Source: Tubulanus polymorphus | Taxonomy: Eukaryota > Animalia > Nemertea | Length of the DNA stretch: 64,000 bases | NCBI RefSeq assembly: GCF_964204645.1 | Contig: NW_027437473.1 | Coordinates: forward strand, 4,001 to 68,000 | Reading direction: 5' to 3' | Part shown: in pieces, positions 15,101-61,668 of the stretch | How positions within the stretch are numbered: position 1 is the stretch's first letter | How the letters are laid out: every line of letters begins with the position of its first letter | Notes under the pieces: model-generated | The model's input: only the letters and a program-made list of their open reading frames with translations | Told to the model about the DNA's origin: nothing | The model's database searches: none | Made by a program: the position numbers and the translations under genes

Positions 15101-17796
15101 TCATTTATTGAGTTTTTTAAGTTCTGATATGATGTAATCTCTCGTATAGCGGTCGGTGCTCCTGCAGCGGATACACAGGTCAGAAAGATGCGGAAGATTA
15201 TTGATTAATTCGACGAATAAATCGATATCGTGCTGTGTATTAATCAGCGCGAGTGAACCGTGAAACTCTAAATAACGAATTGATGAGGCGTGTTTTAGTT
15301 GTTTAAAGATGCGATTGTTCTGTTCCGGTCTAACGAGACAGCTATCAATACGGACTTCTCGCAGCTGATTTACCGCATCTGACGATAGATACCGAACAAG
15401 TGCGTCAACATGAGCTTCTGACCACAACACTATTTCTAATACAGTCAGCCGCGGCAGGTGATCTAGAACGCGGTGTATTTGTAAATTAAATCCGTAAATG
15501 CCAAGACGTTTTAGTTTCGGCATTGAACCGACACTATCACTCATTGCTGCACATTCATCTGTCGTTAGTCCGCGCAGTCCGCGCAGTCCGAGCTGAATTG
15601 TTTCGATGTCTGACGATTTTAACGTGTTGTTTAAATCATTCAATTCCTCCGAACCGATCAAATCATTATCGAATATTACTCCACCAAGACATAAGGTTTT
15701 CAAACTCAGAATGATGTTTATCAGCCCTCTGGTTGTATTTCTATCGAGCTGATATTGACACCACGATCCGAGAGATAGATGTTTTATGGATGGATACGAT
15801 TTGTGAATATTGACTAAAATATAACCTAAACGTTCCGCACTAACACCAGTATTAATAAACAGACTCTCCACTGTATTGTGTGTGTTAGTATCAACACTGA
15901 TCAACCGCGCGTCATATTCAGTGTTAATCGAGTGACCTGTCTTAATCCATTCATTATTGAGTTTCTTGTAACATTCACCAGTGTCGTGGATTCCATCTCG
16001 CCGCACAAACCAGTTTAAACTGTAGCTTTTCTTACACATAGTCAAGTACTGATCGGGTTTTGATAACTCGTATGTGTATAATATCATACCGTGAAGACTA
16101 GTGTTACTCGCTATGGCTGTTTCTAATACGCGGTATTCGTCGGGTTTCAGTTCGTGAATACCCTGTATGTAAACTAGCTCGATCTGACATTGTTTGTGTT
16201 CAAGTATTTTTGCGAGCATGTTTATCCGCGATCTGCCATATACAGATACGAACAACATTTTCTGCATGTAGGGAACTATTTCACTAATGGCGTCGTCCGG
16301 CCAGTCGGCTTCATTCAGGCAGATTAACAACTGATCAGATAAAACAGTTCTTTCGGATCGGAGTTCGATGTAGCGTTCGTATTCGGGGATGAGCACCATC
16401 TCCCTAGTAACCGTAACCAAGGACTGGTACTCATCCGCTATTGTGACTGCTTTTAAATGTTCATCTATTAAAGTCTTGAAAAGTTCACCGAGGCCGCGGT
16501 TAAACTTGTAACGATACAGCAGCCCTGACATGAATCTCGGGTATAATTCACCATATTTCACAAGTTCGTCCGGTAGTTGTTCAAACGCGCATTTATTCCA
16601 GGGTATTTCACCACTGTTGTTGAATTGTACGACCGAGTGTACCGCCGCCAGAAATTCCTGCACAGATTTGTGTATGAACCGCAGCTGGACGGAGCGGTCT
16701 GATTTCCGTCGCGGCGACATCTCTTTGCACGTCAAAGCCGTCCTCTTCGATTCGTCGAGTTCAAGACGACTTTCGCTGAAGCTGTTTTGATGCTCGATGA
16801 GCGTCTCATACGCGACTTGACAAATTTGTTTAAGCGCTTTAGAATTTTCGATATTGCGGAAAAAACATTCCTTCGACAACTCGAGGCCCTCGCGTTTACT
16901 GATCAGAAAACATGTCAAATCGATGTAGATATCGGTGAGTTTTGATGGTATCATAATTTCTTCCTTGTCCATATACAGAAAACAAAACATAAGTAGTATC
17001 AGCGGGTTGTAGTAGATACTGTTAAATAAAGGTGGCGCTGCGTCTTTAAGCCTGTAGAATAGCTGATATGGATCGCGCTCGGGGAATTTTCTCTTCATAA
17101 TATCGATGACTTCTTCCTGTTTGAAGCCGGATATCGATACAACAGTGAATTTGGGATCAGTGACGATCATGCTGCCCCCGGACTCACGTGTTGTTATGAC
17201 GATATGCGCTTTCGGTAATTCATTGGTCACGTGTACGATGTCTATTTTCGCTTTATCGCTTTTTAACTCGTCGAAGCCGTCTAGAAAAAATATCGATTTT
17301 TCTGCATTTTCCCGTAAGAATCTCTCAAAACCAATCAGCAGATTCTCTTCGATTACTCGATTCAAAAGATTTTTGTAAATGTACTTATAAATACACGCGT
17401 TATCAGCGGGCAGTTCATTTAACGGTATATAGAATAACATTGCTTTGCTACAAAACTTTGCTACAAACTCCATTGTTGATGTTGTCCAGGTTAACACTTG
17501 ATTAACTACCTGAGTAGTTTTACCCATACCGGGTTCTCCTACGAGGCACACGGGTTTCACATCACTCTCTTTATAAGTGAAAAGTTTCTCGAAATGATCG
17601 GGTAAAATCAATGACTGCTCCTCACTTCCTTCATTTTTCTTCGGGTTTCGTTTTTGGGCTCGAATTTTCGCGTTTTCTTGGGTGAAGAAGTCGTTTAAAT
17701 TGGTGACTTCATCGCTCCACGAAACCTCTTTGTAATTTTCATCATCGATCATTCGTTGATACGTTTCTTTCAGGTTCTTCTGAACTTGATCAACAT
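15101..17796 (-). CDS. NLR paralog 1, terminal exon: NACHT NTPase + helical domains + LRR-like solenoid
   Basis: Walker A GEPGMGKTT, Walker B IFFLDGFDEL, sensor-1 IVITTR, NPLIL, winged-helix FIHKSVQEFLAA, then LxxLxL-type repeats. The phase-1 acceptor ttttatttttacag|AT lies 44 nt upstream of the ORF-track ATG. Confidence 0.92.
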
Positions 17797-20700
17797 CTGT
17801 AAAAATAAAACCAGTTTGAGATTTTTTTAGAATTTCTATGGCGGCTGATTTTGCCTGAAAATCATAGAATCATAGAAAATGTCATGAGCTTAAATTGTAC
17901 AATTGACCGCAGTTACAAAATATGCCTAGGTACCAAGGAACTAATGAGTTATTCTGCTATTCAACGCCCCCTAGTGACCTTAAACAAAAACCAACGAACC
18001 TGAAACTCACCACAATCATACATCATGTCATGAGCTAAAACTTTGCAATTGATTGCGGTGACAAAATATGCGCCAGAAAGAATCTTTCTGTGGGGTCGGG
18101 TTAGCAACAAGTTCGATCAGAGACATTCAAGGTCCCATCTACACGAGTGGAAAAATCCTTTATTTTCAATCTACACGAGGAAAACATTTCCAAAAGTCAC
18201 CTTTAAAAAAGTCGGCTTTTTCACCTGTTTTAAAAATTATACTTAATCTAAAGATAAACGGCTTCGTTGTTTTTGGTGAACTTCACGTGTTACTAAAACG
18301 AGGGCGATATCATCACAGCTCCGCAGTAAATACTGCAAACTACGCCGCGCATCAACATGCAATTTTCAGCACAGGACAAGATGTTTATTAATCTTTCTCA
18401 TCTTTCTCAGAATTTCAGTTTGAGTCAATCGGATGACAACAATTCATTTCATTTAGTTCTTAACTTTTGAAATGAGGATTGGAAAACTGTATTAGTCACG
18501 TGATACACGATGAACCGGTTTTCTGAACACAAATCTTCGCTGCTTACGCGCATAAGAAGTGCCGGTTTTATGTCCTTGCGCATGTAAACCAAATATACTT
18601 TGTTAATTTAGATTTCATCAAGAAAATGTTTCTAGGCCTCGGATATACAATACAATAAGTAGCGGCACACTTCAATGAGTATGAATTACTTTTTTAGAAA
18701 GGCCGATCAGCCATATCGGCGTGCAAAAGTAAAGGGATATCCCGATATGACATCAGGCGGGAAAATAATTATTATTTTACAGAATTCCTTCGATTTCTTC
18801 TTTCAGAAATAAATTCATTCCTTCTTTCAATAAACCCAGGAAAGTGCAACAAATTTCCCTGAACTAATTACAAAGCTACGTATCTTGTGTCAAATAACAG
18901 AAAAAATGGGAAAATGAAGTCGAATCACTAAAACATCGCGGTCGGCGTTGCTACGCGACCCGACCACAAAAATGAAATCAGTTTGAGATATTTTAAGCCG
19001 GGTGTAAGTCGGTTGCGTCGCGATAAGTCTTTTTACAGTTGCCAGGCGCCATTTTTGGGTACCCACCGGGTCCGCATTGTTGAATTCTTGTCCCAATTTT
19101 TTCCCCAGTTTAATTTTCTTATTTCGTTCATATCTTTGGATTTGATTAAGATAGAAATAAGGTAAAAATATCGATGAACTCAGCTGATAATTAACTTTTC
19201 TATGATATCACTCATTCATAAATTTAAAGCAACAATGCGCGCTGGTGAAGTTATAAACATTCATATCCTCTTCCCGATAATTCAACTTGAATTTTTGCTC
19301 ATCTCATTCAAAAGTTCATAATTCTTACAAATCTTAATCTACATTTTCATTATTCAATTTTGAAGGCAGGGTCTGGACTACCGATCCCCAACCCCGAAGT
19401 CTGTCCTTGTTTTACTAGAACTGCCTATATATCTTTATTTGCCATTTTTTTCAAATGACTAAGTGCCCTTATTTCCATAGTTACTGAAAACTTTGATTTC
19501 AATAAAGCAGGGGCCGGTAAAATTGTGAAATTTCCTGATATAAAGAAACGATCGTACTTGCGATTGTCACGTGGTAACTAAAATTGGAACCAAACCACGC
19601 AAAGATAAAAAGTTTCGAATTCTGGCCTATTAGGGAAAATTGGGTTTCAACACAGCTATTTAGTAATAGTCATTGACTTAGAGCTAAAATAACTGGTCTT
19701 TATGGTCAAAGCAGCTTGAAAACAAATGAAAGAGATTAAATTCTCGATAAGAAATTCTACGAATCCTTCAAAAAAAATTATTTCAAAACGCATCTCACAA
19801 CTATTGTGGGTTCGAATCCCAGTATTACTGGATCAAATCGCGCATCTCCCAGTCACTAGAGCGCGTAGCCGTAGGTCTATTGCGACGATCGCGTCGCAGT
19901 AAGTAGAACATGTGCGACTTGCTGCGACTGGCGTCGTTAAAATTTCTATGCTCGCTGATTTGGTCTCCAAATTTCCGGTCGATTGAGAAAAATTAGCTAA
20001 AAGAAAATATTATTTCCAGCTTGTTCGAAAACAGCTTTTATTTGAGCGCTCACTGAAAAAAACTTATAGGTCCTGATATCAACGAGTTGATCTAAGCAAA
20101 TCAACTTTTAAATCAATTCATTGATCGCGTTTACAAAATATGCAGAGTTACCAATATAAATGGAAAATTGTATTCAACTCAATATTTAATTCTCCTGGTG
20201 GGTTGAACAAAAGACCGAAATTCCATGTCCTATGACAATGCTGATAACGACCAAATATCAAGACTAAGTTAAAATCACTAACCCACTATGTGAAAATGAC
20301 ATTTTCCCCAAAAACACCTCTTTTCATCTGTGTGCAAGAAATTACGTTAAAATTGAATGATGAAAAAAGCCTGTCTGATGTGTCAGGAAATCCCCTTTCC
20401 AAAAAATACCAATCACAAATTTCAATAGAAAATACCAAACAATTAGGAAGCTACAGGTCTCGGAATTTAGACCAAAAATAGGTACAAAAAGGTCTCAGGA
20501 CGGCCATCTTGAGTCCGATCGACCCAATTTTAACTTTTTCTTATGCTGATGTGCGCTGTGGAGATATATACTTATAAAAGATAAAGGATATTGATTAAAG
20601 TCATTCCAATTCCAATATTTGATGAATTTTCATTATAAGTAATTTGTTTATTATTAAGATTGAAATTACGTTATTTTCGTTTTTCAATTCTCAAGTTAAT

Positions 20701-21385
20701 AAAATCATTGTAACCTTTAGAAAGTATTAAATCATCATTTCTTTCTTTAAAAGGAGTTTCAAGAATATTCATTATTTTTTCATCTTAATTACCTTTATAA
20801 TCTAAAACTGTATTGAATATTTGAGGATTTCTGGAGCCATTATGGAAAGTATCTATTAGTTCAGTAATTAAATATGTTTCATTTAATAATATTTGATTAA
20901 TTACAGTAATATTATCAATTTTATTTTGTCTTCCATAAACTAAATATGTTGCTGAGATATAATTTTCAATGTTTAACAATCAAGGAATTCATGCCTGAAA
21001 TGTGGCTATAAAAACTGATCGTATGTTTACTAGATTTTGAGTAGGTGTCAGTCACAAGTTCTTCCAATAGCAATAAATATGTATGAACTGGCTGCCTGTC
21101 AGCCATCTTGATTGTGAACAGGGACAATCCGAAATAACTGGATTCCATCTACGGACGAACGGGAAAAAAGTGAAATCAACAGCCAACTGGGACTAAAGTC
21201 CCAACTGGGCTTACACAATCGTACGCCACCTGGTGGATAGAATGTCTTGATATAATTTTCTATCATTTTAGTTAAAGATTTAGAACGATCTTTAGAGACA
21301 TGGTCAAAGACTTCGGACCCGTCTTATGATTTAGGATCACATTTGGACTCAAGCACGAGTTCTGATGGTAGAAATCTATAATTAC

Positions 21386-21520
21386 CGAGATTCTCAGCAG
21401 GTCTGTCGATAGTTTGTGTATCTCCCTGGTAAACATTCATCGTATTATTGTCACCGATTTGAACCATTTTCGATTGATTTACATTTATTCCTGGATTACT
21501 CTGTGCCATAGTACCACAAA
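21386..21520 (-). CDS. NLR1 cassette exon A1 (135 nt, phase 1-1), canonical RHIM: (V)CGTMAQSNPGINVNQSKMVQIGDNNTMNVYQGDTQTIDRPAENL
   Basis: Borders tgtttgtcag| and ctcg|gtaatt. The core VQIGDNN resembles RIPK3 VQVGDNN, and the exon is in frame with the NACHT exon. Confidence 0.8.
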
Positions 21521-22021
21521 CTGACAAACAGGATTTAGAATTCAGTCATTTTATCTCAATAAGTGCAGCACATTTTTCCTGACCTAATTGTTTTGTCCAG
21601 TATTTACACAATCAGCCTCTACTCATATTCAGACTGAAGTTTTCTTTATTTCCGCTAAAAGTCGTTTTTCCGATAAACTGTTTATATGTTTTTATATTTA
21701 CCCTGGACTGATAAACAAACTGTGTCACCAGATCTGACTGTTTTTATTCCTACTCGAGACTGATAAACAAACTGTGTCACCAGATGTGATAAGAGACCAT
21801 AATTCAAAATACCGATTATATAACCAGACCCTGACAGTATTAGTCAAAGATTTAAAACAATCGAGTTGGTGGGTCCATTTTGGTCCTCAGAATTTTGCCA
21901 AAGACAATGTATTACTTTCGCCTCAAAACTTTATACCGGTTTTATATGCGAGATCACATTTAGACTCAAGTCACATCATTCTGTACTGAACTGAACTCTG
22001 ATGGTTAAAATCTATAATTAC

Positions 22022-22165
22022 CGAGATTCTCAGCAGGTCTGGTGCTGGCTTGTGTAACTGCGGGGATAATTTGAGTCACTGTCGTCGTATTATTGTCACC
22101 CCTTACACTTAAGTTAGAATTGTCTGCATTTATTCCTGGATTACTCTCCGCCATAGTACCGTTTA
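22022..22165 (-). CDS. NLR1 cassette exon A2 (144 nt, phase 1-1), divergent RHIM-like: MAESNPGINADNSNLSVRGDNNTTTVTQIIPAVTQASTRPAENL; ATG at 22154
   Basis: Borders tttttcag| and ctcg|gtaatt, homologous to A1, with an actATGg Kozak-like context. A2+A1+NACHT exon gives 987 aa. Confidence 0.7.
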
Positions 22166-22782
22166 CTGAAAAACAGAATTTAGAATTCAGTCATTTTATC
22201 TCAACAAGTGCAGCACATTTTTCTGACCTAATTGTTTTGTCAAGTTTTTACACAATTAGCCTTTATCAGGGTTCTATGGTGGCTGATAAGGGCCAAATGC
22301 ATTAATTAATAACACGACCTCGATTACAGAAAAACGCAAATCGAAACCTACCTGCTACCGCGCAAAAACGAACTTTTCGTAAAAACGAAAAACCGCGCAA
22401 AAACGAAATATTATAGAGCAAAAACGAATATTTTCGTTTTCAATTTGTCAATCGGTTTGTCTTATTGTTACAAGACACATCTATGCTATATATAGACTCA
22501 CTCAGGTGATTACTAACAAACACAGCCATATATAGTACTCTAACCTTTATTCGCACACACAAAATGTCAAAAATACAAAAAAATAACTTTTTGTTTTTTT
22601 TTTCATAAAAATCAAGACAAATACTGGCTATGATTTTTTTTAAACATACGAATAAATAGCGACTTGAAACTAAATGAATACACCCGCTACGAACATGTGA
22701 CATCTGAATATGAATAGGGTCTATTCACATTCAGACGTCACGAGTTGAAAGTGACAAAATCGAGGAAATGAACAGCAACAAT

Positions 22783-24410
22783 TAGCTATCAGACAGTTCA
22801 CTAGCTGTCAGACAGTTCACTAGCTGTCAGACAGTTCACTAGCTATCAGACAGTTCACTAGCTGTCAGACAGTTCACTAGCTGTCAGACAGTTCACTAGC
22901 TGTCACACAGTTCCCTAGCTGTCAGACAGTTCACTAGCTGTCAGACAGTTCACTAGCTGTCACACAGTTCACTAGCTGTCACACAGTTCACTAGCTATCA
23001 GACAGTTCACTAGCTATCAGACAGTTCACTAGCTGTCAGACAGTTCACTAGCTGTCAGACAGTTCACTAGCTGTCAGACAGTTCACTAGCTATCAGACAG
23101 TTCACTAGCTATCAGACAGTTCACTAGCTGTCAGACAGTTCACTAGCTGTCAGACAGTTCACTAGCTATCAGACAGTTCACTAGCTGTCAGACAGTTCAC
23201 TAGCTGTCAGACAGTTCACTAGCTGTCACACAGTTCCCTAGCTGTCAGACAGTTCACTAGCTGTCAGACAGTTCACTAGCTGTCAGACAGTTCACTAGCT
23301 GTCACACAGTTCACTAGCTATCAGACAGTTCACTAGCTATCAGACAGTTCACTAGCTGTCAGACAGTTCACTAGCTGTCAGACAGTTCACTAGCTGTCAG
23401 ACAGTTCACTAGCTATCAGACAGTTCACTAGCTATCAGACAGTTCACTAGCTGTCAGACAGTTCACTAGCTGTCAGACAGTTCACTAGCTATCAGACAGT
23501 TCACTAGCTATCAGACAGTTCACTAGCTGTCAGACAGTTCACTAGCTGTCAGACAGTTCACTAGCTGTCAGACAGTTCACTAGCTATCAGACAGTTCACT
23601 AGCTATCAGACAGTTCACTAGCTGTCAGACAGTTCACTAGCTGTCAGACAGTTCACTAGCTGTCAGACAGTTCACTAGCTATCAGACAGTTCACTAGCTA
23701 TCACACAGTTTACTAGCTGTCACACAGTTTACTAGCTGTCACACAGTTCACTAGCTGTCAGACAGTTCACTAGCTGTCACACAGTTCACTAGCTATCAGA
23801 CAGTTCACTAGCTGTCAGACAGTTCACTAGCTATCAGACAGTTCACTAGCTATCAGACAGTTCACTAGCTGTCACACAGTTCACTAGCTGTCACACAGTT
23901 CACTAGCTGTCACACAGTTCACTAGCTGTCACACAGTTCCCTAGCTGTCAGACAGTTCACTAGCTGTCAGACAGTTCACTAGCTATCAGACAGTTCACTA
24001 GCTATCAGACAGTTCACTAGCTGTCAGACAGTTCACTAGCTGTCAGACAGTTCACTAGCTGTCACACAGTTCACTAGCTATCAGACAGTTCACTAGCTGT
24101 CACACAGTTCACTAGCTGTCACACAGTTCACTAGCTGTCACACAGTTCACTAGCTGTCACACAGTTCACTAGCTGTCACACAGTTCACTAGCTGTCACAC
24201 AGTTCACTAGCTGTCACACAGTTCACTAGCTATCAGACAGTTCACTAGCTGTCACACAGTTCACTAGCTATCAGACAGTTCACTAGCTGTCACACAGTTC
24301 ACTAGCTATCACACAGTTCACTAGCTGTCACACAGTTCACTAGCTATCACACAGTTCACTAGCTATCACACAGTTCACTAGCTGTCACACAGTTCACTAG
24401 CTATCACACA
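22783..24410. repeat. 19-bp minisatellite, about 85 copies
   Basis: Unit agct(g/a)tca(g/c)acagttcact. Confidence 0.97.
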
Positions 24411-24790
24411 TTGTGAGAGTGTATCTTTATGAAAACACCCCCTCCCCTCCTACCTAAATCACAATCGCGTTCTGTTCACAAAAATGACAAGAATATTTAA
24501 ACAACATACCTCTCAATATGACAAAACTGTAAGATGAATATATACTGTTTCAAAACCGTACACGTCCACAGGACTCACTACTGCTCAATAATAAACCATA
24601 CTAAACAAAAAAACTCCTCTCGATGGCAAAATCATCAACTGGTTGATGATGGCCATAAATTGGTTGAAGTAGAATAAGTCTGAACTGCGCACTTATACCG
24701 ATCGATATAAAACCGCACCCCTGTCACGTGATCTATTTTTGGATATGATCGTCACGTGTCCTGTAAAACCGGTCCTGTAAAATTTACAGT

Positions 24791-26990
<2,200 letters not shown>

Positions 26991-27809: not shown

Positions 27810-30523
27810 CTATATCTGTATTTCTACTCTCAGTCTTTTATTGAGTTTTTTAAGTTCTGATTTGATGTAATCTCTCGTCGTATAGCGGTCGGTGCTCCAG
27901 CAGAGGATATACAGGTCAGAAAGATGCGGAAGATTATTGATTAATTCGACGATTAATTTGACGAATAAATCGATATCGTGCTGTGTATTAATCGGCGCGA
28001 TTGGTGAACGGTGAAACTCTAAATAACGAATTGATGAGACGTGTTTTAGTTGTTTAAAGATACGATTGTTCTGTACCGGTCTATCGGGATAGCTATAAAT
28101 ACGGACTTGTCGCAGCTGATTTACCGCATCTGACGATAGATACCGAACAAGTGCGTCAACATCAGCTTCTGACCGCAACACTATTCCTAATACAGTCAGC
28201 CGCGGCAGGTGATCTAGAACGCGGTGTTTTTGTAAATTAAATCCGTTAATGACAAGACGTTTTAGTTTCGGCATTGAACCGACACTATCACTCATTGCTG
28301 CACATTCATCTGTCGTTAGTCCGAGCCGTCCGAGCTGAATTGTTTCGATGTGTGAAGATTTTATCGTGTTGTTTAAATCATTCCATTCCTCCGAACCGAT
28401 CAAATTCTTATCGAATATTAATCCACTAAGACATAAGGTTTTCAAACTCGGAATGATGTTTATCAGCCCTCTGATTGTATTTCTATCGAGCTGATATTCC
28501 CACAGAGATCTGAGAGATAGATGTTTTATGGATGGATACGATTTGTGAATATTGACTAAAATATAACCTAAACGTTCCGCACTAACACGAGGATCAATAA
28601 ACAGACTCTCCACTGTATTGTGTGTGTTAGTATCAACACTGATCAACCGCGCGTCATCTTCAGTGTTAATCACGTGACTTGTAATAATCCATTCATTATT
28701 GAGTTTCTTGTAACATTCACCAGGGTCTAATCCACCTCGCTCCACAAACCAGTTTATACTGTTGCTCTTCTGACACATAGTCAAGAACTGATCGCGTATT
28801 GATGACCTGTATGTAACTAATATCATACCGTGAAGACTAGTGTTACTCGTTATGGCTGTTTCTAATACGCGGCATTCGTCGGGTTCCAGTTCCTTATAAC
28901 TGTGAATAATGTAAACTAGCTCGATCTGACATTGTTTGTGTTCGAGTATTTTTGCGAGCATGTTTATCCACGATCTGCTATATACAGATACGAACAACAT
29001 TTTCTGCATGTAGGGAACTATTTCACTAATGGCGTCGTCCGGCCAGTCGGCTTCATCCATGCAGATTGACAACTGTTCAGATAAAACAGTTCTTTCGGAT
29101 CGGAGTTCGAAGTAGCGTTCGTAATCGGGAATGAGCGCCATCTCCCTAGTAACCATATCCAAGGAATCGTACGTCATACTATCCGCTATTGTGACTGCTT
29201 TTAAATGTTCATCTATTAAAGTCTTGAAAAGTTCACCGAGGCCGCGGTTATACTTGTAACGATACAGCAGCCCTGACATGAATCTCGGGTATAATTCACC
29301 ATATTTCACAAGTTCGTCCTGTAGTTGTTCAAACGCGCATTTATTCCAGGGTATTTCACCGCTGTTGTTGAATTGCACGACCGAGTGTACCGCCGCCAGA
29401 AATTCGTGCACAGATTTGTGTATGAACCGTAGCTGGACGGAGCGGTCTGATCTCCGTCGCGGCGACACCTCTTTACACGTCAAAGCCGTCCTTTTCGATT
29501 CGTCGAGTTCAAGACGACTTTCGGTGAAGCTGTTTTGATGCTTGATGAGCGTCTCATACGCGACTTGACAAATTTCTTTAAGCGCTTCGGAATTTCCGAT
29601 ATTGCGGAAAAAACATTCCTTCGACAACTCGAGGCCCTCGCGTTTACTGATCAGAAAACATGTCAAATCGATGTAGATATCGGTGAGTTTTGATGGTATC
29701 ATAATTTCTTCCTTGTCCATATACAGAAAACAAAACATATGTAGTATCAGCGGGTTGTAGTAGATACTTTCAAATAAAGGTGACGCTGCGGCTTTAAGCT
29801 TGTCGAATAGCTGTTCTGGATTGGGGAATTTTCTCTTCATAATATCGATGACTTCTTTCTGTTTGAAGCCGGATATCGATACAACAGTGAATTTGGGATC
29901 AGTGACGATCATGCTGCCCCCGGACTCACGTGTTGTTACGACGATATGCGCTTTCGGTAATTTATTGGTCACGTGTACGATGTATTCCTTCGCTTTATCG
30001 CTTTTTAACTCGTCGAAGCCGTCTAGAAAAAATATCGATTTTTCTGCATTTTCCCGTAAGAATCTCTTAAAACCAATCGGCAAATGCTCTTCGATTTCTC
30101 GACTCAAAAGATCTTCGTAAATGTACTTATAAATACACGCGTTATCAGCGGGCAGTTCATTTAACGGTATATAGAATAACATAGGAAATCTTTTCAGAAA
30201 CGGTGATCGCTCCCATGACAACACTTGATTAACTACCTGAGTTGTTTTACCCATACCGGGTTCACCTACGAGGCACACGCGTTTCATAGCACGCTCGTCA
30301 TAAGTGAAAAGCTTCTCGAAATGATCGGGTAAAATCACTGGCTGCTCCTCACTTCCTTCATTTTTCTTCGGGTTTCGTTTTCGGGGTCGAATTTTCGCGT
30401 GTTCTCGGGTGAAGAAGTCGTTGAAATTGACGAATTCATCGCTCCACGAAACCTCTTTGTAATTTTCATCATCGATCATTCGTTTATACGTTTCTTTCAG
30501 GCTCTTCCGAACTTGATCAACAT
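27810..30523 (-). CDS. NLR paralog 2, terminal exon: NACHT + LRR-like
   Basis: Same NACHT motifs (GEPGMGKTT, FFLDGFDEL, FIHKSVHEFLAA). Phase-1 acceptor tttttacag|ATGTTGATCAAGTT. Confidence 0.92.
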
Positions 30524-33500: not shown

Positions 33501-34683
33501 TCATCTAAATTACCTTTATAATCTAAAACTGTATTGAATATTTTAGGATTTCTGGAGCCATTATGGAAAGTATCTATTAGTTCAGTAATTAAATATGTTT
33601 CATTTAATAATATTTGATTAATTACAGTAATATTATCAATTTTATTTCGTCTTCCATAAACTAAATTTGTTGCTGAGATATAATTTTCAATGTTTAACAA
33701 TCGAGGAATTCATGCCTGAAATGTGGCTATAAAAACTGATCGTATGTTTACTAGATTTTGAGTAGGTGTCAGTCACAAGTTCTTCCAATAGCAATAAATA
33801 TGTATGAACTGGCTGCCTGTCAGCCATCTTGATTGTGAACAGGGACAATCCGAAATAACTGGATTCCATCTATGGACGAACGGGCAAAAAGTGAAATCAA
33901 CAGCCAACTGGGACTAAAGTCCCAACTGGGCTTAAACAATCGTACGCCACCTGGTGGATAGAATGTCTTGATATAATTTTCTATTATTTTAGTTAAAGAT
34001 TTAGAACGATCTTTAGAGACATGGTCAAAGACTTCGGACCCGTCTTATGATTTAGGATCACATTTGGACTCAAGCACGAGTTCTGATGGTAGAAATCTAT
34101 AATTACCAATTGATATTGTGCAACTCGATACTAACGACTATAGCCGCGATCACGGGGAGACGATTTGACCCGGGCTGCAAAATTGGTACGGATCAGGTCC
34201 GAGTCAAATTGGCCTTAGAGATTGCATTCACACGCAAACCTCTCACTTGATACTAAACAAAACGAAGTGAGTCACTACCGGAACCAGTTGACCCGCACCT
34301 GGTCCGACGTTTTTGGTCAAATTGGGCCCAGGTCCATTTTGAATTATAGGGTTAGGATTGAAACGTGATAGTATCTGATCACGGTAACTTTCACTCTTAT
34401 TTTACTGTTAACAGTATTTATACTGTTAATCTGTTTTTATTCCTACTCGAGACTGATAAACAAACTGTGTCACCAGATGTGATAAGAGACCATAATTCAA
34501 AATACCGATTATAGAACCTGACCCTGACTGTTTTAGTCAAAGATTTAAAACAATCGGGTTGGTGGACAATATATTACTTTCGCCTCAAAACTTTACACCG
34601 GATTTATATACGAGATCACATTTAGACTCAAGTCACATCATTCTGTACTGAACTGAACTCCGATGGTTAAAATCTATAATTAC

Positions 34684-34779
34684 CGAGATTCTCAGCAGGT
34701 CTATCGACGGTTTGCTCCTCGTCATCGCGAACATTTTCTGCATTTATTCCTGGATTACTCTGTGCCAAAGCACCACAAA
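34684..34779 (-). CDS. NLR2 cassette exon B1 (96 nt, RHIM-null spacer): (V)CGALAQSNPGINAENVRDDEEQTVDRPAENL
   Basis: AG/GT borders, phase 1-1, no stop codon. Confidence 0.65.
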
Positions 34780-35815: not shown

Positions 35816-35953
35816 CGAGATTCTCAGCAGGTCTGTCGCTGGCTTGAGTAACTGCGTGGATAATTTGATTCACTGTATTATTGTCACCGATTATACTTAA
35901 ATTAGAATTGTCTGCATTTATTCCTGGATTACTCGCCGCCATAGTAACGTTTA
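35816..35953 (-). CDS. NLR2 cassette exon B2 (138 nt, divergent RHIM-like): (V)NVTMAASNPGINADNSNLSIIGDNNTVNQIIHAVTQASDRPAENL
   Basis: AG/GT borders, phase 1-1, homologous to A2. Confidence 0.7.
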
Positions 35954-36287: not shown

Positions 36288-36383
36288 CGAGATTCTCAGC
36301 AGGTCTATCGACGGTTTGCTCCTCGTCATCGCGAACATTTTCTGCATTTATTCCTGGATTACTCTGTGCCATAGTACCCAGTA
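36288..36383 (-). CDS. NLR2 cassette exon B3 (96 nt spacer): (V)LGTMAQSNPGINAENVRDDEEQTVDRPAENL
   Basis: AG/GT borders, phase 1-1. Confidence 0.65.
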
Positions 36384-37227: not shown

Positions 37228-37323
37228 CGAGATTCTCAGCAGGTCTATCGACGGTTTGCTCCTCGTCATCGCGAACATTTTCTGCATTCATTCCTGGATT
37301 ACTCTGTACCAAAGCACCACAAA
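37228..37323 (-). CDS. NLR2 cassette exon B4 (96 nt spacer): (V)CGALVQSNPGMNAENVRDDEEQTVDRPAENL
   Basis: AG/GT borders, phase 1-1. Confidence 0.65.
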
Positions 37324-38325: not shown

Positions 38326-38421
38326 CGAGATTCTCAGCAGGTCTATCGACGGTTTGCTCCTCGTCATCGCGAACATTTTCTGCATTTATTCCTGGATTAC
38401 TCTGTGCCATAGTACCCAGTA
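38326..38421 (-). CDS. NLR2 cassette exon B5 (96 nt spacer, same type as B3)
   Basis: AG/GT borders, phase 1-1, located 2038 bp from B3. Confidence 0.65.
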
Positions 38422-39286: not shown

Positions 39287-39382
39287 CGAGATTCTCAGCA
39301 GGTCTATCGACGGTTTGCTCCTGGTCATCGCGAACATTTTCTGCATTTATTCCTGGATTACTCTCCGCCATAGTAACGTTTA
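39287..39382 (-). CDS. NLR2 cassette exon B6 (96 nt, likely first coding exon, ATG at 39371): MAESNPGINAENVRDDQEQTVDRPAENL
   Basis: AG/GT borders and actATGg context. The model including all exons gives 1106 aa. Confidence 0.65.
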
Positions 39383-49300: not shown

Positions 49301-49417
49301 TCTTGATAGCGTCGATAGAAGAGAAAGTTTTTAATTTATTTCTGGCGGTGGCAATTTAGATCAGGTCTGATTAGAAACTGTTGTAATCAGAGAATAATAG
49401 CTGGTAGTCAGCGAAGA

Positions 49418-49670
49418 GTCACCACATCTGACTGGTCACCAGTCACCGAACCTGACTGGTCACTGGTCACCACACCTGACTGGTCACTGGTCACCACAAC
49501 CTGATTGGTCACTGGTCACCACACCTGACTGGTCGCCGGTCGCCACACCTGACTGGTCGCCAGTCACCACACCTGCTGACTGGTCACTGGTCACCGCACC
49601 TGACTGGTCATCAGTCACCACACCTGACTGGTCACCAGTCACCGCACTTGACTGATCGCCGGTCACCACA
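49418..49670. repeat. Short version of the 24-bp minisatellite
   Basis: Same unit as 7022-8142. Confidence 0.9.
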
Positions 49671-50537
49671 CTAACCAGACCAACTTACAAACTCGGTCAG
49701 TCACTACTGATCTATGGCCCAGTGGTCAACATGCTCGGCTGGTATACTGAGGATCGCAGGTTCGAGTCCTGCTAGGGTTAGGATCGAACTAGGATTAGGG
49801 TTACCAGAGCTAGGGTTAGGGAGATTTCAGAGTTATTTCTGTTCTTCCCAGCATGTCGTTTTGGTGAAGAAGGCGTAATTCATTACCGGGGGCGATCGGG
49901 TCTGATTAGAAATTGTTGAAATCAGAAAGATCATAACTTTTTGATATTTCACAAGCAAGATAAACTTGTTCGACTTTTATAAAACAGAAGTAGACCGTAT
50001 GACGTAAACATCAAGCGATTGAAATATTCACTTAACTTTTATTTAGCAAAAAATCCTCGAGATGATTTTGTTTGCTAGATTTAAGTTGTTCAATTAAACA
50101 ACTTAGTATTCAAAAATGATGGTAGTTTTGTTTTTATAATTTTCAATATAAATGGTGGGACTTACTTTTTAGAATATTTGATAACGCAATCGATGCTTCA
50201 AAAAATACCGATAGAAAAGGAGGAATTAGATATATTTATTACATAATTACGTATAATTTTCTGACCGATTAGAGGGATTGAGATCGGCCCAAGTGGAATT
50301 CTAATATGAGGAGCTAACTAAGGGCGATAGCAGCGGTAAATATCAGTAAAAATGGATGTCTAATAAAAGTTTATCGCAGTTACCCGAATATTTTAAAATC
50401 TGTGTTTAATTCTATCGTTGCGAGGAAAAATGAAATTGGTTTTTTCAAAATGAAAATTGTGAATGATTTGAAATGCGTCGTTAAAAGTTGGTTAAAACGG
50501 TTTTTGGGAGAAGGCTATCAATACTCACAGTGATCAG

Positions 50538-52152: not shown

Positions 52153-52593
52153 TATCAGATTATCTGCATTTGTTGAGATTTATTGCCATGGTGACCGCAA
52201 AATGTTTGATTTTCTCATTCGGAAAATATGACTGTGGATCATGGAATTCGGGCTCGAATACTTGTGCTGTCCAAATCAATGTTTGCAGTTGCGCCCTTCA
52301 GACGTGTGGTTTTAATGATCCTACAGTAGGAGGTAAAATCTTTGGATCAATTTTACCTCCCATCTCAACTACGGTATATTAGTCATGTTCGATGTTATAT
52401 TCAAAATGTACCAAATAATGTGGAGAAGATGTTTCAAGAAAAAGATGGTTTAAAACCTGTGAGGCAACTCAAATATATGCAACAACTATATTTGCCGAAA
52501 AAAAACACACACAAAATGAGAAAATCAAAGATTTGCGATTGCCATGGCAATAAATCTCAACAAATTCAGATTTTTTTCCGAGATAATCTGATA
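52153..52593. mobile_element. MITE-like element with long imperfect terminal inverted repeats
   Basis: tatcagattatct..atttgttgagatttattgccatgg..tttgattttctcatt pairs with aatgagaaaatcaaa..ccatggcaataaatctcaacaaat..agataatctgata. It begins exactly where homology to copies I and II breaks. Confidence 0.7.
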
Positions 52594-53006
52594 CCGCGTG
52601 TAAAGTTTACTTCAATTTCCGACAATAAGATTTCACACATATATAATGTGAATTCCAAAATCTAGGCCCCAATGACCATATGGTCACTTTTTGGAAATTT
52701 GGATACAAAACGGTTGCTATGGCAACGACGGTAACAATGAAAATTGGGCAGCGGTCATTTTCGTGTTCAGGGAAGTCCACTGAACTACCCGACATGCGGG
52801 CTGCCAAGCTGTAACATGCCATACATAACAACCCACAATTCAGAAGATAAGCTCTAGGATAAACTGCGGTTTAATATCAGTTCAGTTTCTGTTGTGTTTC
52901 TAGAGAAGTGACGTTTTACAAAATGCGCGTTAGTCGATTGAATCTTATAAATCGATGAATCTACTTAATTTGCGTCACTGAGCTCCGATATCGATGATAT
53001 ATCAGA

Positions 53007-55876
53007 TTAATCAGATTCATCTGATGAATCAGATGAATCAGATGAATCTGATAATACAGATGCTGGGTAGTAAACCCCTATTATTACTCTCAGTCTTTTA
53101 TTGAGTTTTTTAAGTTCTGATATGATGTAATCTCTCGTCGTATCGGGGTCGGTGCTCCAGCAGCGGATATACAGGTCAGAAAGATGCGGAAGATTATTGA
53201 TTAATTCGACGATTAATTTGCCGAATAAATCGATATCGTGCTGTGTATTAATCAGCGCGAGTAAACCGTGAAACTTTAAACAACGAATTGATGAGACGTG
53301 TTTTAGTTGTTTAAAGATGCGATTGTTCTGTTCCGGTCTATCGAGACGGCTATCAATACGGACTTGTATCAGCTGATTTACCGCATCTGTTGATAGATAC
53401 CGAACAAGTGCGTCAACATCAGCTTCTGAACACAACACTATTTCTAATACAGTCAGCCGCGGCAGGTGATCTAGAACGCGGTGTTTTGGTAAATTAGATC
53501 CGTTAATGACAAGACGTTTTAGTTTCTGCATTGAACCGACACTATCACTCATTGCTGCACATTGATCTGTCGTTAGTTCGCGCAGTTCGCTCAGTTCGAG
53601 CAGTTCGCGCAGTTCGCGCAGTCCGCGCAGTCCGCGCAGTCCGCGCACTCCGAGCTGAATTGTTTCGATGTCTGACGATTTTATCGTGTTGTTTAAATCA
53701 TTCAATTCCTCCGAACCGATCAAATCTTTATCGAATATTACTCCAAAAAGACATAAGGTTTTCAAACTCGGAATGATGTTTATCAGCCCTCTGATTGTAT
53801 TTCTATCGAGCTGATATTCCCACAGCGATCTGAGATATAGATGTTTTATGGATGGATACGATTCGTGAATATTGACTAAAATATAACCTAAACGTTCCGC
53901 ACATATACGAGGATCAATAATCAGACTCTCCACTGTATTGTGTGTGTTAGTATCAACACTGATCAACCGCGCGTCATATTCAGTGTTAATCTCGTGACTT
54001 GTAATAATCCATTCATTATTGAGTTTCTTGTAACATTCACAAATGTCGTCGAGGTATCTACCTCGCCGCACAAACCAGTTTATACTGTTGCTCTTCTTAC
54101 ACATAGTCAAACACTGATCGGGTTTTGATGACCCGTATGTATCTAATATCATACCGTGAAGACTAGTGTTACTCGCTATGGCTGTTTCTAATACGCGGTA
54201 TTCGTCGGGTTTCAGTATCATATAACCCTTTATGTAAACTAGCTCGATCTGACATTGTTTGTGTTCGAGTATTTTTGCGAGCATGTTTATCCACGATCTG
54301 CTATAATATGCAGATACGAACAACATTTTCTGCATGTAGTGAACTATTTCACAAATGGCGTCGTCCGGCCAGTCGGCTTCATTCATGCAGATTAACAACT
54401 GATCAGATAAAACAGTTCTTTCGGATCGGAGTTCGATGTAGCGTTCGTAATCGGGGATGAGCGCCATATCTGCCGATTCCCTAGTAACCGTAACCAAGGA
54501 CTCTAACCTATCCACTATTGTGACTGCTTTTAAATGTTCATCTATTAAAGTCTTGAAAAGTTCACCGAGGCCGCGGTTATACTTGTAACGATACAGCAGC
54601 CCTGCCATGAATCTCGGGTATAATTCACCATATTTCACAAGTTCGTCCGGTAGTTGTTCAAACGCGCATTTATTCCAGGGTGTTTTCCAGGGTATTTCAT
54701 TACTGTTGTTGAATTGTACGACCGAGTGTACCGCCGCCAGAAATTCGTGCACAGATTTGTGTATGAACCGCAGCTGGACGGAGCGGTCTGATTTCCGTCG
54801 CGGCGACACCTCTTTGCATGTCAAAGCCGTCCTTTTCGATTCGTCGAGTTCAAGACGACTTTCGGTGAAGCTGTTTTGATGCTCGATGAGCGTCTCATAC
54901 GCGACTTGACAAATTTCTTTAAGCGCTTCGGAATTTCCGATATTGCGGAAAAAACATTCCTTCGACAACTCGAGGCCCTCGCGTTTACTGATTAGAAAAC
55001 ATGTCAAATCGATGTAGATATCGGTGAGTTTTGATGGTATCGTAATTTCTTCCTCGTCCATATACAGATAACGAAACATAAGTAGTATCAGCGGGTTGTA
55101 GTAGATACTGTTAAATAAAGGTGACGCTGCGTATCTAAGCTTGTCGAATAGCTGATATGGATCGCGCTTGGGGAATTTTCTCTCCAGAATTTCGATGACT
55201 TCTTTCTGTTTGAAGCCGGATATCGATACAACAGTGAATTTGGGATCAGTGACGATCATGCTGCCCCCGGACTCACGTGTTGTTATGACGATATGCGCTT
55301 TCGGTAATTCATTGGTCACGTGTACGATGTCTTTCTTCGCTTTATCACTTTTCAACTCGTCGAAGCCGTCTAGAAAAAATATCGATTTTTCTGCATTTTC
55401 CCGTAAGAATCTCTCAAAACCAATCAGCAGATTCTCTTCGATTACTCGATATAAAAGATTTTTGTAAATGTACTTATAAATACACGCGTTATCAGCGGGC
55501 AGTTCATTTAACGGTATATAGAATAACATAGGAAACTTTGCTACAAACTCCGTTGTTGATGTTGTCCAGGTTAACACTTGATTAACTACCTGAGTAGTTT
55601 TACCCATACCGGGTTCACCTACAAGGCACACGGGTTTCACATCACTCTCTTTATAAGTGAAAAGTTTCTCGAAATGATCGGGTAAAATCAATGACTGCTC
55701 CTCACTTCCTTCATTTTTCTTCGGGTTTCGTTTTTGGGCTCGAATTTTCGCGTTTTCTTGGGTGAAGAAGTCGTTTAAATTGGTGACTTCATCGCTCCAC
55801 GAAACCTCTTTGTAATTTTCATCATCGATCATTCGTTGATACGTTTCTTTCAGGTTCTTCTGAACTTGATCAACAT
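53007..55876 (-). CDS. NLR paralog 3, terminal exon: NACHT + LRR-like with an acidic Ser/Asp tail
   Basis: Same NACHT motifs, with the phase-1 acceptor at 55877/55876. The ORF-track N-terminal extension to 55940 is intronic read-through. Confidence 0.92.
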
Positions 55877-58800: not shown

Positions 58801-59447
58801 TTCTTTCTTTAAAAGGAGTTTCAAGAATATTCATTATTTTTTCATCTAAATTACCTTTATAATCTAAAACTGTATTGAATATTTTAGGATTTCTGGAGCC
58901 ATTATGGAAAGTATCTATTAGTTCAGTAATTAAATATGTTTCATTTAATAATATTTGATTAATTACAGTAATTTTATCAATTTTATTTCGTCTTCCATAA
59001 ACTAAATTTGTTGCTGAGATATAATTTTTAATGTTTAACAATCGAGGAATTCATGCCTGAAATGTGGCTATAAAAACTGATCGTATGTTTACTAGATTTT
59101 GAGTAGGTGTCAGTCACAAGTTCTTCCAATAGCAATAAATATGTATGAACTGGCTGCCTGTCAGCCATCTTGATCGTGAACAGGGACAATCCGAAATAAC
59201 TGGATTCCATCTATGGACGAACGGGCAAAAAGTGAAATCAACAGCCAACTGGGACTAAAGTCCCAACTGGGCTTAAACAATCGTACGCCACCTGGTGGAT
59301 AGAATGTCTTGATATAATTTTCTATTATTTTAGTTAAAGATTTAGAACGATCTTTAGAGACATGGTCAAAGACTTCGGACCAGTCTTATGATTTAGGATC
59401 ACATTTGGACTCAAGCACGAGTTCTGATGGTAGAAATCTATAATTAC

Positions 59448-59582
59448 CGAGATTCTCAGCAGGTCTGTCGATAGTTTGTGTATCTCCAAGGTAAACATTC
59501 ATCGTATTATTGCCACCCATTTGAACCATTGATTCATTTACATTCACTTTATTTACATTACTCTGTACCAAAGCACCACAAA
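59448..59582 (-). CDS. NLR3 cassette exon C1 (135 nt, RHIM): (V)CGALVQSNVNKVNVNESMVQMGGNNTMNVYLGDTQTIDRPAENL
   Basis: AG/GT borders, phase 1-1, VQMG core. Confidence 0.8.
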
Positions 59583-60601
59583 CTGAAAAACAGAATTTAG
59601 AATTCAGTCATTTTATCTCAACAAGTGCAGCACATTTTTCCTGACCTAATTGTTTTGTCCAGTATTTACACAATCAGCCTCTACTCATATTCAGACTGAA
59701 GTTTTCTTTGTTTCCGCTACTGATAAAGGATAATGGAATGTAGGAAAAAAATGGCCAAGGAAAATTTATGAGAACTACTGACAATGTTAATAAAACATTA
59801 AGCCTTCAAATTAATGACATCTTATATTTTTCATGGGGCTTAAAACAATTAAAATCGGTATAAATGAGATCAGAAATTTGATTAACTTACATTTCATTTC
59901 ATTACAGGATTGCTACATTGGAGAGTGATTGAATCCTATGTCTGAACTCAACTAACCCATGATGAGTTCACTCCTACATGTAGCAATCCTCCACCTAATA
60001 TCAATTATATCTGATATTGTGCAACTCGATACTAACGACTATAGCCGCGATCACGGGGAGACGATTTGACCCGGGCGGCAAAATTCGTACGGATCAGGTC
60101 CGAGTCAAATTGGCCTTAGAGATTGCATTCACACGCAAACCTCTCACTTGATACTAAACAAAGCGAAGTGACTCACTACCGGAACCAGTTGACCCGCACC
60201 TGGTCCGACGTTTTTGGTCGGGCCATTTTAAATTATAGGGTTAGGGTTGAAACGTGATAGTATCTGATCACGGTAACTTTCACTCTTATTTTACTGTTAA
60301 CAGTATTTATACTGTTAATCTATTTTTATTCCTACTCGAGACTGATAAACAAACTGTGTCACCAGATCTGATAAGAGACCATAATTAAAAATACCGATTA
60401 TAGAACCTGACCCTGACTGTTTTAGTCAAAGATTTAAACCAATCGGGTTGGTGGGTCCATTTTGGTACTCAGAATCTTTAAAGACAATATATTACTTTCG
60501 CCTCAAAACTTTACACCGGATTTATATACGAGATCACATTTAGACTCAAGTCACATCATTCTGTACTGAACTGAACTCCGATGGTTAAAATCTATAATTA
60601 C

Positions 60602-60697
60602 CGAGATTCTCAGCAGGTCTATCGACGGTTTGCTCCTCGTCATCGCGAACATTTTCTGCATTTATTCCTGGATTACTCTGTGCCATAGTACCCAGTA
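60602..60697 (-). CDS. NLR3 cassette exon C2 (96 nt spacer)
   Basis: AG/GT borders, phase 1-1, same type as B3/B5. Confidence 0.65.
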
Positions 60698-61572
60698 CTG
60701 AAAAAACAGGATTTAGAATTCAGTCATTTCATCTCAACAAGTGCAGCACATTTTTCCTGACCTAATTGTTTTGTCCAGTATTTACACAATCAGCCTCTAC
60801 TCATATTCAGACTGAAATTTTCTTTGTTTCCGCTACTGATAAAGGATAATAGACTAAACTTCAACATCTCCATCACAAGTTCGCATTTGGAACGTTAGAT
60901 AATTTGACCTCCTTAGAGATTTCCAGCGACGTTACAAAACACAGTTGAAATTGTTTATTAGGTTTTTATCGTGTGAAAAACGCATTCAGATAACGCGCCG
61001 GGGTCGGTCATCGACTGAGATATCAAATCACAAGCCACAACAGGTCGCCATCCGCAAATCACTGACTTTATTTTCTAAAAATGCCTGAAGAATACTGTCT
61101 TAATTTGCTGGATTAGTTTTAAAGAGGCGCACACTCGACAATCTGACATCGAAATGTAACCAGCATCGGTTTCTTTCAAGGATTTTACGTAGAAAAAAAA
61201 CTGTGTCAGCAAAAGACAGACTTATGTTAGATGTTGCAACGAGAAGACTTGTATCTTCTAAATCACTGAATACTGTTTTAACCTGCCGGAGGAAGGGGCG
61301 CATACTCGACAGTCTTACATTGGAATGAATGTAATTAGGATCAGTTTTTTCTTTCATGGATTTTAATGTAAAAAATAAATGATTCTAAAAGTTGATTTCA
61401 TTGACATTCATTACGCAGGAAGGGAAGCTGCTTTGTTAAAGTCAGGCATAAACGTGTGACTCAGTCACACGTCTCAAAACTTTACACCGGTTTTATATAC
61501 GAGATCACATTTTGACTCGAGTCACATCATTCTGTACTGAACTGAACTCCGATGGTTAAAATCTATAATTAC

Positions 61573-61668
61573 CGAGATTCTCAGCAGGTCTATCGACGGT
61601 TTGCTCCTCGTCATCGCGAACATTTTCTGCATTTATTCCTGGATTACTCTCCGCCATAGTAACGTTTA
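61573..61668 (-). CDS. NLR3 cassette exon C3 (96 nt, likely first coding exon, ATG at 61657)
   Basis: AG/GT borders and actATGg context. C3+C2+C1+NACHT exon gives 1061 aa. Confidence 0.65.

Follow-up and report, generated by a model that had tools for sequence, protein, structure and literature searches.

What makes up the N-termini of the three NACHT-LRR (NLR) genes that lie clustered on a small scaffold of Tubulanus polymorphus (Nemertea), and could these receptors signal through RHIM-type amyloid? The DNA analysed here, subsequently referred to as the window, comprises 64,000 nucleotides (positions 4,001 to 68,000 of contig NW_027437473.1, assembly GCF_964204645.1) of an unplaced scaffold of 68 kb. 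Positions are counted from the first letter of the window, and the three genes, designated NLR1, NLR2 and NLR3, are read from the minus strand (-). A first-pass annotation, made from the sequence alone, had proposed that their N-termini are assembled from short homologous exons, here called cassettes, which carry a RHIM, a variant of it or no motif at all and any subset of which can be spliced in frame. We report that the cassettes are coding exons of NLR genes and that, to judge from their sequence, they are RHIM-derived modules in various states of conservation, the canonical RHIM being the exception within the window.

Symmetric cassette exons upstream of three NACHT-LRR exons

In each of the three genes, the entire sensor and oligomerisation part is encoded by one large exon with a phase-1 acceptor. 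These exons start at 17796 (NLR1), 30523 (NLR2) and 55876 (NLR3), each behind ttttatttttacag/AT (the slash denoting the splice site) as had been predicted, and remain open in phase 1 up to stop codons at 15101, 27810 and 53007, respectively. The NLR1 exon (15101-17796, -) has 897 codons plus stop and is identical to RefSeq XP_074662016/5; the NLR2 exon (27810-30523, -) has 903 codons plus stop and corresponds to RefSeq P0006/P0021; the NLR3 exon (53007-55876, -) has 955 codons plus stop and encodes a Ser/Asp-rich C-terminal tail. Pfam detected the NACHT domain (PF05729) in all three, with 48.4, 59.8 and 56.5 bits at a cut-off of 26.7, and each exon encodes a Walker A motif (GEPGMGKT in the NLR1 translation). 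For the C-terminal third, Pfam returned only a sub-threshold LRR_14 match (21 bits). Following alignment of this part with the paralogs, the last 357 residues were folded with AlphaFold2 (AF2), yielding a horseshoe of alternating strands and helices (pLDDT 81.8, pTM 0.81). Foldseek matched this model with a probability of 1.0 to the LRR of NLRC4 (4kxf, E 7e-8), to NLRP3 and other NLRPs and to ribonuclease inhibitor. No match was found when the PDB was searched by sequence with the NACHT-LRR exon, and RefSeq names the window genes ‘uncharacterized protein’ throughout. Taken together, Pfam for the NACHT domain and AF2 plus Foldseek for the repeats identify bona fide NACHT-LRR genes with LRRs of the ribonuclease inhibitor type. 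With ~95% identity across more than 6 kb of both exons and introns, the three gene units are tandem duplicates of very recent origin.

Upstream of these exons lie 11 homologous segments of 96-144 nt, all of them at the coordinates given in the first-pass annotation. The 16-mer GAGAATCTCGGTAATT, which spans the proposed donor GAGAATCTCG/GTAATT, has 11 exact copies in the window, all on the minus strand, while the chance expectation is 0.62 matches even with 3 mismatches allowed. An acceptor is located 96-144 nt upstream of each donor; it reads ...TTTTCAG in 10 of the 11 cases and ...TTTGTCAG (TGTCAG) in the cassette starting at 21520. The cassettes measure 144, 135, 96 (seven times), 138 and 135 nt, and all 11 have a pyrimidine-rich acceptor, a length divisible by 3 and a stop-free frame in phase 1-1, i.e. 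with one base of a split codon at each end. With the same phase on both sides, a length divisible by 3 and intact splice sites, they have the properties of symmetric cassette exons. About 130 nt of conserved sequence upstream of the acceptor travel with each of them. An in-frame ATG, on which the first-pass annotation was silent, is found ~4 codons from the start of 8 of the 11 cassettes; those starting at 37323, 34779 and 59582, among them the gene-proximal ones of NLR2 and NLR3, lack it.

Positions and order of the cassettes within each gene agree with the layouts proposed earlier. NLR1 possesses a variant cassette (22022-22165, -; 144 nt) with the core ..LSVRGDNNTTTV.., which lacks the Q-x-G tetrad and has no Pfam RHIM match, followed by a canonical RHIM cassette (21386-21520, -; 135 nt; ..KMVQIGDNNTMNVYQG..), the acceptor tract of which, TTTGTCAG, is slightly weaker. 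The in-frame ATG of the variant cassette is the start codon of RefSeq isoform X1. The NLR2 array runs from 39382 to 34684 in the order null, null, null, null, variant, null. It begins with a null cassette of type A (39287-39382, -; 96 nt; NVTMAE.., with ATG), followed by one of type B (38326-38421, -; 96 nt; LGTMAQ.., with ATG) and one of type C (37228-37323, -; 96 nt; CGALVQ.., without leading ATG), at whose internal Met (PGMN) RefSeq isoform X3 begins. Next come a further type B cassette (36288-36383, -; 96 nt), a variant cassette in which the tetrad Q is replaced (35816-35953, -; 138 nt; ..LSIIGDNNTVNQ..) and a type C cassette without ATG (34684-34779, -; 96 nt), which is joined to the NACHT exon in RefSeq. 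Homology between NLR2 and NLR1 (95%) reaches from the NACHT exon up the intron and ends exactly at the last base of the RHIM cassette (34107 corresponding to 21386), so that an orphan donor flank is present in NLR2 (34095-34125, -), the RHIM exon itself being missing. The NLR3 array (61668 to 59448) consists of null, null and RHIM-like cassettes, namely type A (61573-61668, -; 96 nt), which provides the start codon of RefSeq X2, type B (60602-60697, -; 96 nt) and a divergent RHIM-derived cassette without ATG (59448-59582, -; 135 nt; ..SMVQMGGNNTMNVYLG..).

We aligned 25 cassette copies from across the genome together with their 130-nt flanks. All 6 distinct indels within the exons are divisible by 3 versus 6 of 33 in the flanks (hypergeometric P ~3e-4, our own calculation), and the six exon lengths that occur among the 25 copies (96, 132, 135, 138, 144 and 156 nt) are multiples of three without exception. 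Copies on C6, C8, C9, C32 and C1 all keep acceptor, donor and open frame, at DNA identities down to ~75-80%. The indel pattern therefore indicates, independently of annotation, that the cassettes are under coding constraint. RefSeq (Gnomon) proteins XP_074662010-16 and the paralogs on C8 join cassettes to one another and to the NACHT exon exactly at the junctions predicted in the first-pass annotation; XP_074662011, for example, is made of null A, null B, the VQMG cassette and the NACHT exon of NLR3. In these proteins, the codons split by the introns become Val at cassette-cassette junctions and Asp at the junction with the NACHT exon. Exons were searched individually, the joined sequences all being RefSeq proteins. 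The claim that the segments are coding exons of NLR genes is thus borne out by RefSeq junctions, intact distant copies and the indel pattern.

The RefSeq models chain two to seven cassettes, with null cassettes included in the coding sequence, and exon-skipping isoforms are listed for family genes. Isoforms X1-X4 of LOC141909593 (C8) represent all four combinations of a variant and a RHIM-like cassette, and in LOC141909594 the third cassette is swapped between isoforms. In the case of NLR1 (LOC141914658), X1 joins the variant cassette straight to the NACHT exon, skipping the RHIM cassette, and X2, whose start Met lies beyond the VQIG core, includes only the 3’ part of cassette 21386-21520. NLR2 and NLR3 are treated by RefSeq as one gene, LOC141914657 (27810-61668), of which model X1 connects the three NLR3 cassettes to four NLR2 cassettes and skips the NLR3 NACHT exon as well as the first two NLR2 cassettes; this join may represent read-through transcription or a mapping artefact. 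The alternatively included RHIM’ cassette on C8 has a purine-rich acceptor region, and in the pyrimidine tract of the NLR1 RHIM cassette that is skipped, a T is replaced by G; both features are consistent with weak exon definition. A public sequencing run presumed to be RNA contained no reads matching 16800-22780. Chaining of cassettes is well supported by the RefSeq annotation; regulated alternative splicing, to which the same annotation points, is plausible but unproven.

RHIM status of the cassettes and candidate partner proteins

The core tetrad of RHIMs follows the consensus (V/I)-Q-(V/I/L/C)-G (PMC9444067). Membership in the family was judged by Pfam PF12721, a model of 22 positions with a gathering cut-off of 20 bits. 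Cassette 21386-21520, in which the tetrad VQIG is followed by DNNTMNV, scored 22.0 bits (E 1.1e-4), and in a six-frame scan of the 268-Mb genome it reached 21.9 bits at a genome-wide E-value of 0.06. This cassette (21387-21518, -) also matches Pfam EAD10 (Effector-associated domain 10), but only weakly and below the threshold (15.2 bits, E 0.022). A second cassette that the first-pass annotation had called RHIM, 59448-59582 in NLR3, received no reportable Pfam RHIM score, although its place in the layout is as described; it is clearly homologous to the NLR1 RHIM cassette (86% DNA identity), and its tetrad VQMG falls outside the published consensus (PMC9444067). Nor was Pfam RHIM reached by the two variant cassettes, which lack the tetrad Q (SIIG and SVRG), or by the seven null cassettes, which lack the entire core and retain an acidic 31-residue peptide with a net charge of -6. 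By Pfam, RHIM family membership thus holds for one window cassette, 21386-21520.

Only five loci in the genome exceeded the PF12721 cut-off in the six-frame scan. Three of these are cassettes directly upstream of NACHT exons, i.e. 21386-21520 and two paralogs on C6 (22.4 bits), and the remaining two belong to non-NLR genes. The same scan gave no match in 14 control genomes. When the cassette core is aligned with the two non-NLR RHIMs, the pattern VQ[IL]G-x-x-NTM-x-V is common to all of them.

These two proteins, encoded on C3 and at 4.55 Mb of C8, are possible partners of the cassette NLRs. The C3 gene is an open reading frame (ORF) of 422 residues (L001 5420-6685, -; G000:C3:26755419-26756684) with an internal RHIM (25.9 bits when scored as a fragment) and, behind it, an acidic tail of KNDETERKTVD-type repeats. 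Its first 200 residues resemble vertebrate TIR adaptors (Atlas feature search 0.92, 182 shared features), the nearest Atlas clusters being TICAM2/TIRAP. A homology search with this ORF found nothing, and a PDB sequence search returned nothing useful. The likeness to TIR adaptors is a lead, not proof, and would correspond to a TRIF-like layout of TIR plus RHIM. In the C8 protein (L002 5374-6060, -; G000:C8:4552373-4553059), whose ORF ends with ..CVQLGNGNTMEVSIA-stop, the VQLG core (..VQLGNGNTMEVSIA) is located five residues before the stop codon and scores 23.4 bits as a fragment. Pfam recognised no domain besides RHIM in either partner protein, and Atlas gave no usable match for the rest of the C8 protein.

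The cassette family across the genome and its precedents

The T. polymorphus genome has roughly 27 NACHT loci, of which about 20 belong to the cassette NLR family. For at least 27 cassette copies, a NACHT exon of this family follows downstream on the same strand, mostly within 0.3-6 kb; two null copies on C6 lie ~20 kb away from theirs. The first-pass annotation had considered that the cassettes might be a dispersed repeat unlinked to NLRs, but this is true of a minority only, namely six orphan copies with intact splice sites and frame (three on C1 and three on C8). Within the 5-10 kb examined downstream of these six, neither a NACHT domain nor a Death domain nor a large ORF was found. The C1 orphans are three identical copies within a 2,079-bp tandem repeat (L003, G000:C1:19744860-19749155). 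Those on C8 (L004-L006, near 3595862, 2387450 and 3808426) are dispersed, adjoin ORFs resembling those of long interspersed nuclear elements (LINEs) and each have two motif units per exon, one being NVQIGDN. The nearest relatives of the family show 63-67% identity within Tubulanus, falling to 26% outside, where the similarity is that of generic NACHT domains; in this analysis the family occurred in T. polymorphus only. A search for RHIM-like motifs among the 150 top-ranking NACHT relatives of other species found none.

Two intact and identical NACHT-LRR exons of 943 codons reside on C6 (L010 607-3435, near 18.09 Mb; L011 629-3457, near 17.60 Mb). Both are preceded, at a distance of 2.3 kb, by a canonical RHIM cassette scoring 22.4 bits, and if any NLR truly bears a canonical RHIM, these two genes may be the most promising ones. 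On C9, members of a more distant subfamily (~60% identity) possess only one N-terminal exon (L015, G000:C9:3604800-3608800, about 490-1335; protein P0013). There, at least 7 tandem copies of a 63-nt unit, each coding for 21 residues that include IVQIGDK, precede a longer RHIM-like unit, AQIGATNTINY, and the NACHT exon. Single-sequence AF2 modelling of seven 21-residue repeats of P0013 gave two short strands per repeat (pLDDT 70.5, pTM 0.70). Foldseek of this model against the PDB returned nothing significant, the weak matches being solenoid proteins (beta-solenoids). The HET-s repeat likewise has a period of 21 residues. Given tandem repeats within one exon on C9 and arrays of exons in the window, the motif has thus been multiplied on two independent occasions.

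The NACHT-LRR exon is also joined to other N-termini. In paralog P0009, the same phase-1 exon stands behind a helical N-terminal region of 290 residues, and the phase-1 acceptor serves as a general docking site for modules at the N-terminus. This 290-residue region shows no similarity to the RHIM partner proteins; similarity would have corresponded to the fungal ‘all-in-one versus split’ pattern. RefSeq models P0007, P0012 and P0023 on C6 combine a signal peptide, an Ig-like ectodomain, a strong transmembrane helix and a Cys-rich juxtamembrane segment with the NACHT-LRR exon. A membrane-anchored NLR would be unusual, and these type-I membrane models could be annotation fusions.

The overall architecture has been encountered before. 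Kajava et al. (2014) described numerous and diverse RHIM proteins from Branchiostoma with the RHIM where CARD-like domains usually sit; one of them, B. floridae BF82280, has the N-terminal motif/NACHT/repeat architecture of fungal NWD2, and other invertebrates encode subsets of these RHIM families, including proteins with two or three RHIMs in series (PMC4262963). Like BF82280, the cassette NLRs are animal NACHT proteins with an N-terminal RHIM in the death-fold position and C-terminal repeats (PMC4262963). The proposal of the first-pass annotation that a RHIM takes the place of a death-fold domain on an NLR fits this picture, but the idea had already been published in silico for Branchiostoma, a deuterostome (PMC4262963). 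T. polymorphus, in contrast, is a protostome, a member of the Nemertea, and the NACHT part of its cassette NLRs showed only generic similarity to other species. The amphioxus report is silent on exon structure, symmetric cassettes, variant or null copies and splicing (PMC4262963). Howe et al. (2016) found that zebrafish NLR N-termini comprise several repeats of ~30 residues, which are of two main types and have been duplicated and shuffled (PMC4852459). The nemertean family resembles these zebrafish NLR-B30.2 (NLR-C) proteins in being large, lineage-specific and equipped with N-terminal repeat modules (PMC4852459). However, the zebrafish repeats have no assigned motif or function and the likeness is architectural only; unlike in zebrafish NLR-B30.2, Pfam scans of the window found no match to FISNA or SPRY/B30.2.

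A short amyloid motif at the N-terminus of a NACHT or NB-ARC repeat protein is also common to the fungal pairs NWD2/HET-S and PNT1/HELLP (PP motif, RHIM-like) and to bacterial BASS motifs, and as with the fungal effectors, a similar motif occurs on other proteins of the T. polymorphus genome, one of them (L002) at the extreme C-terminus. Amyloid templating from NLR to effector is experimentally established in fungi and has been inferred in bacteria. In both groups, NLR and effector genes are adjacent and the motif is single-copy in one exon, whereas adjacency was not found in T. polymorphus: here, the candidate partners are on other chromosomes, one of them being TIR-like, and the motif lies in an exon that is duplicated and can be skipped. 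RIPK1, RIPK3, ZBP1, TRIF and Drosophila PGRP-LC/LE/IMD share with the canonical cassette a core tetrad flanked by N and hydrophobic residues; in ZBP1, several RHIMs of differing sequence follow one another, and TRIF is a TIR adaptor with a RHIM, a layout that the C3 protein resembles. None of these vertebrate and Drosophila RHIM proteins, however, is an NLR or carries its RHIM in an array of cassette exons. A literature search found no paper on NLRs or RHIMs in nemerteans, and a search on RHIM in lophotrochozoans was uninformative. In view of the amphioxus and zebrafish precedents, the claim to novelty must therefore be reduced to the combination and the phylum, i.e. RHIM-derived, phase-symmetric mini-exons that occur in canonical, drifted, Q-less and deleted states, are annotated as alternatively included and belong to a family making up most of the NACHT loci in a nemertean genome.

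The window also contains repetitive elements. An intact LINE ORF of 978 residues (endonuclease plus reverse transcriptase; 11598-14534, +) follows directly downstream of NLR1, and a 19-bp minisatellite (86 copies, 95% matches; 22783-24410) lies ~600 nt upstream of the first NLR1 cassette. A 24-bp minisatellite occupies 7022-8143, with a shorter copy at 49418-49671 between NLR2 and NLR3. Pfam matched the phage T4 gp5 repeat to an ORF of 391 residues (6966-8141), but this ORF is only the 24-bp minisatellite read in frame (VTGDQSG octapeptides), and the match was rejected as spurious.

From cassette arrays to a proposed RHIM-type signalling

As the best overall explanation, we propose that arrays of RHIM-derived symmetric mini-exons on young NACHT-LRR paralogs feed RHIM-type signalling, a reading that we hold to be probable, if only just. 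All cassettes would descend from one ancestral first coding exon carrying a RHIM, with copies now present in three states: core kept (VQIG or drifted VQMG), core without the Q (variants) and core lost (nulls). The symmetry of every copy allows cassettes to be chained or skipped in any number with the frame left intact, and tandem duplication, deletion and probably exon skipping would alter the number and kind of motifs in front of the NACHT domain. Ligand-driven NACHT oligomerisation would cluster the N-terminal RHIMs; these may then nucleate a RHIM-type cross-beta assembly and recruit other RHIM proteins of the genome, for which the TIR-adaptor-like protein on C3 and the C8 protein with its extreme C-terminal RHIM are the candidates. 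This logic would be that of fungal NWD2/HET-S and PNT1/HELLP and has already been proposed for the amphioxus RHIM-NACHT proteins; amyloid signalling by the cassette NLRs is itself an inference.

Several observations weigh against this proposal. Nine of the 11 window cassettes (variants and nulls) are without a canonical tetrad, NLR2 has lost its RHIM exon altogether, and neither RefSeq isoform of NLR1 holds the canonical RHIM intact. No RefSeq protein turned up for the two intact C6 genes with canonical RHIM cassettes within the length range that was searched. In the young window copies, the introns on either side are conserved to the same degree as the exons, so that persistence of the null cassettes could be neutral, and the orphan copies on C1 and C8 have no NACHT exon close by. 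The RefSeq isoforms may partly reflect cross-mapping between near-identical cassettes: since the cassettes share identical ends, junction reads may be assigned to the wrong copy. Three public sequencing runs cover introns and exons of the region 16800-22780 evenly and contain no splice joints; these runs are therefore DNA. Finally, the candidate partners are uncharacterised and unlinked, both genes being far from any cassette-bearing NLR, and a complex prediction with two NLR1 RHIM cassettes and two RHIM segments of the C3 protein scored 0.03, which is uninformative either way.

Many of these points return if the arrays are regarded as neutral debris of a young, unstable cluster. The cassettes would then be genuine exons or copies of exons, but null and variant arrays would be by-products of unequal crossing-over that do not tune signalling and are tolerated only because the symmetric phase renders their inclusion harmless, and the window paralogs would be losing RHIM function instead of modulating it. 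The paralogs are only ~5% diverged, with introns conserved like exons; NLR2 has lost the RHIM exon, the NLR3 tetrad has drifted to VQMG and fails Pfam, the RefSeq isoforms of NLR1 omit the RHIM core, and orphan and pseudogene copies exist. However, frame and splice sites are intact in 25 of 25 copies, some of which are only ~80% identical, exon indels are always multiples of 3, RefSeq coding sequences include null cassettes, and in the distant C9 subfamily the VQIG core has been retained and amplified independently. We consider the neutral account rather unlikely. A further objection concerns the motif itself, the resemblance of which to RHIM might be superficial, the cassettes encoding a disordered N/Q-rich linker or another interaction motif without amyloid templating. 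The short Pfam model of 22 positions, scores barely above the cut-off (22 versus 20), the genome-wide E-value of 0.06, the failure of most cassettes and the uninformative complex prediction speak for such caution. We nevertheless regard it as highly unlikely that the resemblance is superficial: there are just five matches in 268 Mb, NLR cassettes account for three of these, similarity reaches past the tetrad into G-x-N-N-T-M-x-V, which is common to the two other RHIM proteins of the genome, and the position of the motif is that of the RHIM in amphioxus NACHT proteins (PMC4262963).

The least probable alternative in our estimate is that the cassettes are not chained at all and serve as mutually exclusive alternative first coding exons, each behind its own or a shared 5’ untranslated exon. 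Such an arrangement would suit the ATG found in the same context in 8 of 11 cassettes, the start of every RefSeq model at a cassette ATG or an internal Met and the ~130 nt conserved upstream of each acceptor. Yet the phase-1 acceptor, which would be irrelevant for a first coding exon behind an untranslated one, is kept, and two to seven cassettes are chained in RefSeq models; moreover, the gene-proximal cassettes of NLR2 and NLR3 lack an ATG and therefore need an upstream coding exon.

Within the proposal of RHIM-type signalling, exon choice might even operate as a switch of amyloid competence, with the RHIM as the competent form, the Q-less motif seeding a different partner and null cassettes acting as non-signalling or dominant-negative spacers. 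We think this stronger version doubtful and clearly unlikely. If it were true, a cross-seeding barrier would provide two channels, and splicing together with copy-number variation would set threshold and output of an animal NLR. The first-pass annotation had gone further and suggested that the arrays diversify the signalling output rather than the ligand sensor. As an exclusive claim this is wrong. In the LRR parts of the three window paralogs (15101-16100, 27810-28840 and 53007-54190), the ratio of nonsynonymous to synonymous divergence (dN/dS) is 1.8-3.1, with 59-64 nonsynonymous versus 6-10 synonymous differences (one-sided P 0.002, 0.005 and 0.05); in the NACHT domain it is 0.15-0.6. The sensor end thus shows diversification of the kind seen in other NLR clusters; variation contributed by the cassettes at the opposite end comes in addition to that of the sensor and does not replace it.

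Amyloid signalling by NLRs in animals has so far rested on the in-silico amphioxus note of 2014. The nemertean family, in which the N-termini consist of RHIM-derived modules only, extends this architecture to the protostomes and opens it to experimental tests. Canonical, drifted, Q-less and deleted motifs within otherwise identical flanks amount to a natural mutational series for RHIM nucleation and cross-seeding, and the symmetric-exon design illustrates clearly how duplicated exons can vary the signalling end of an immune receptor.

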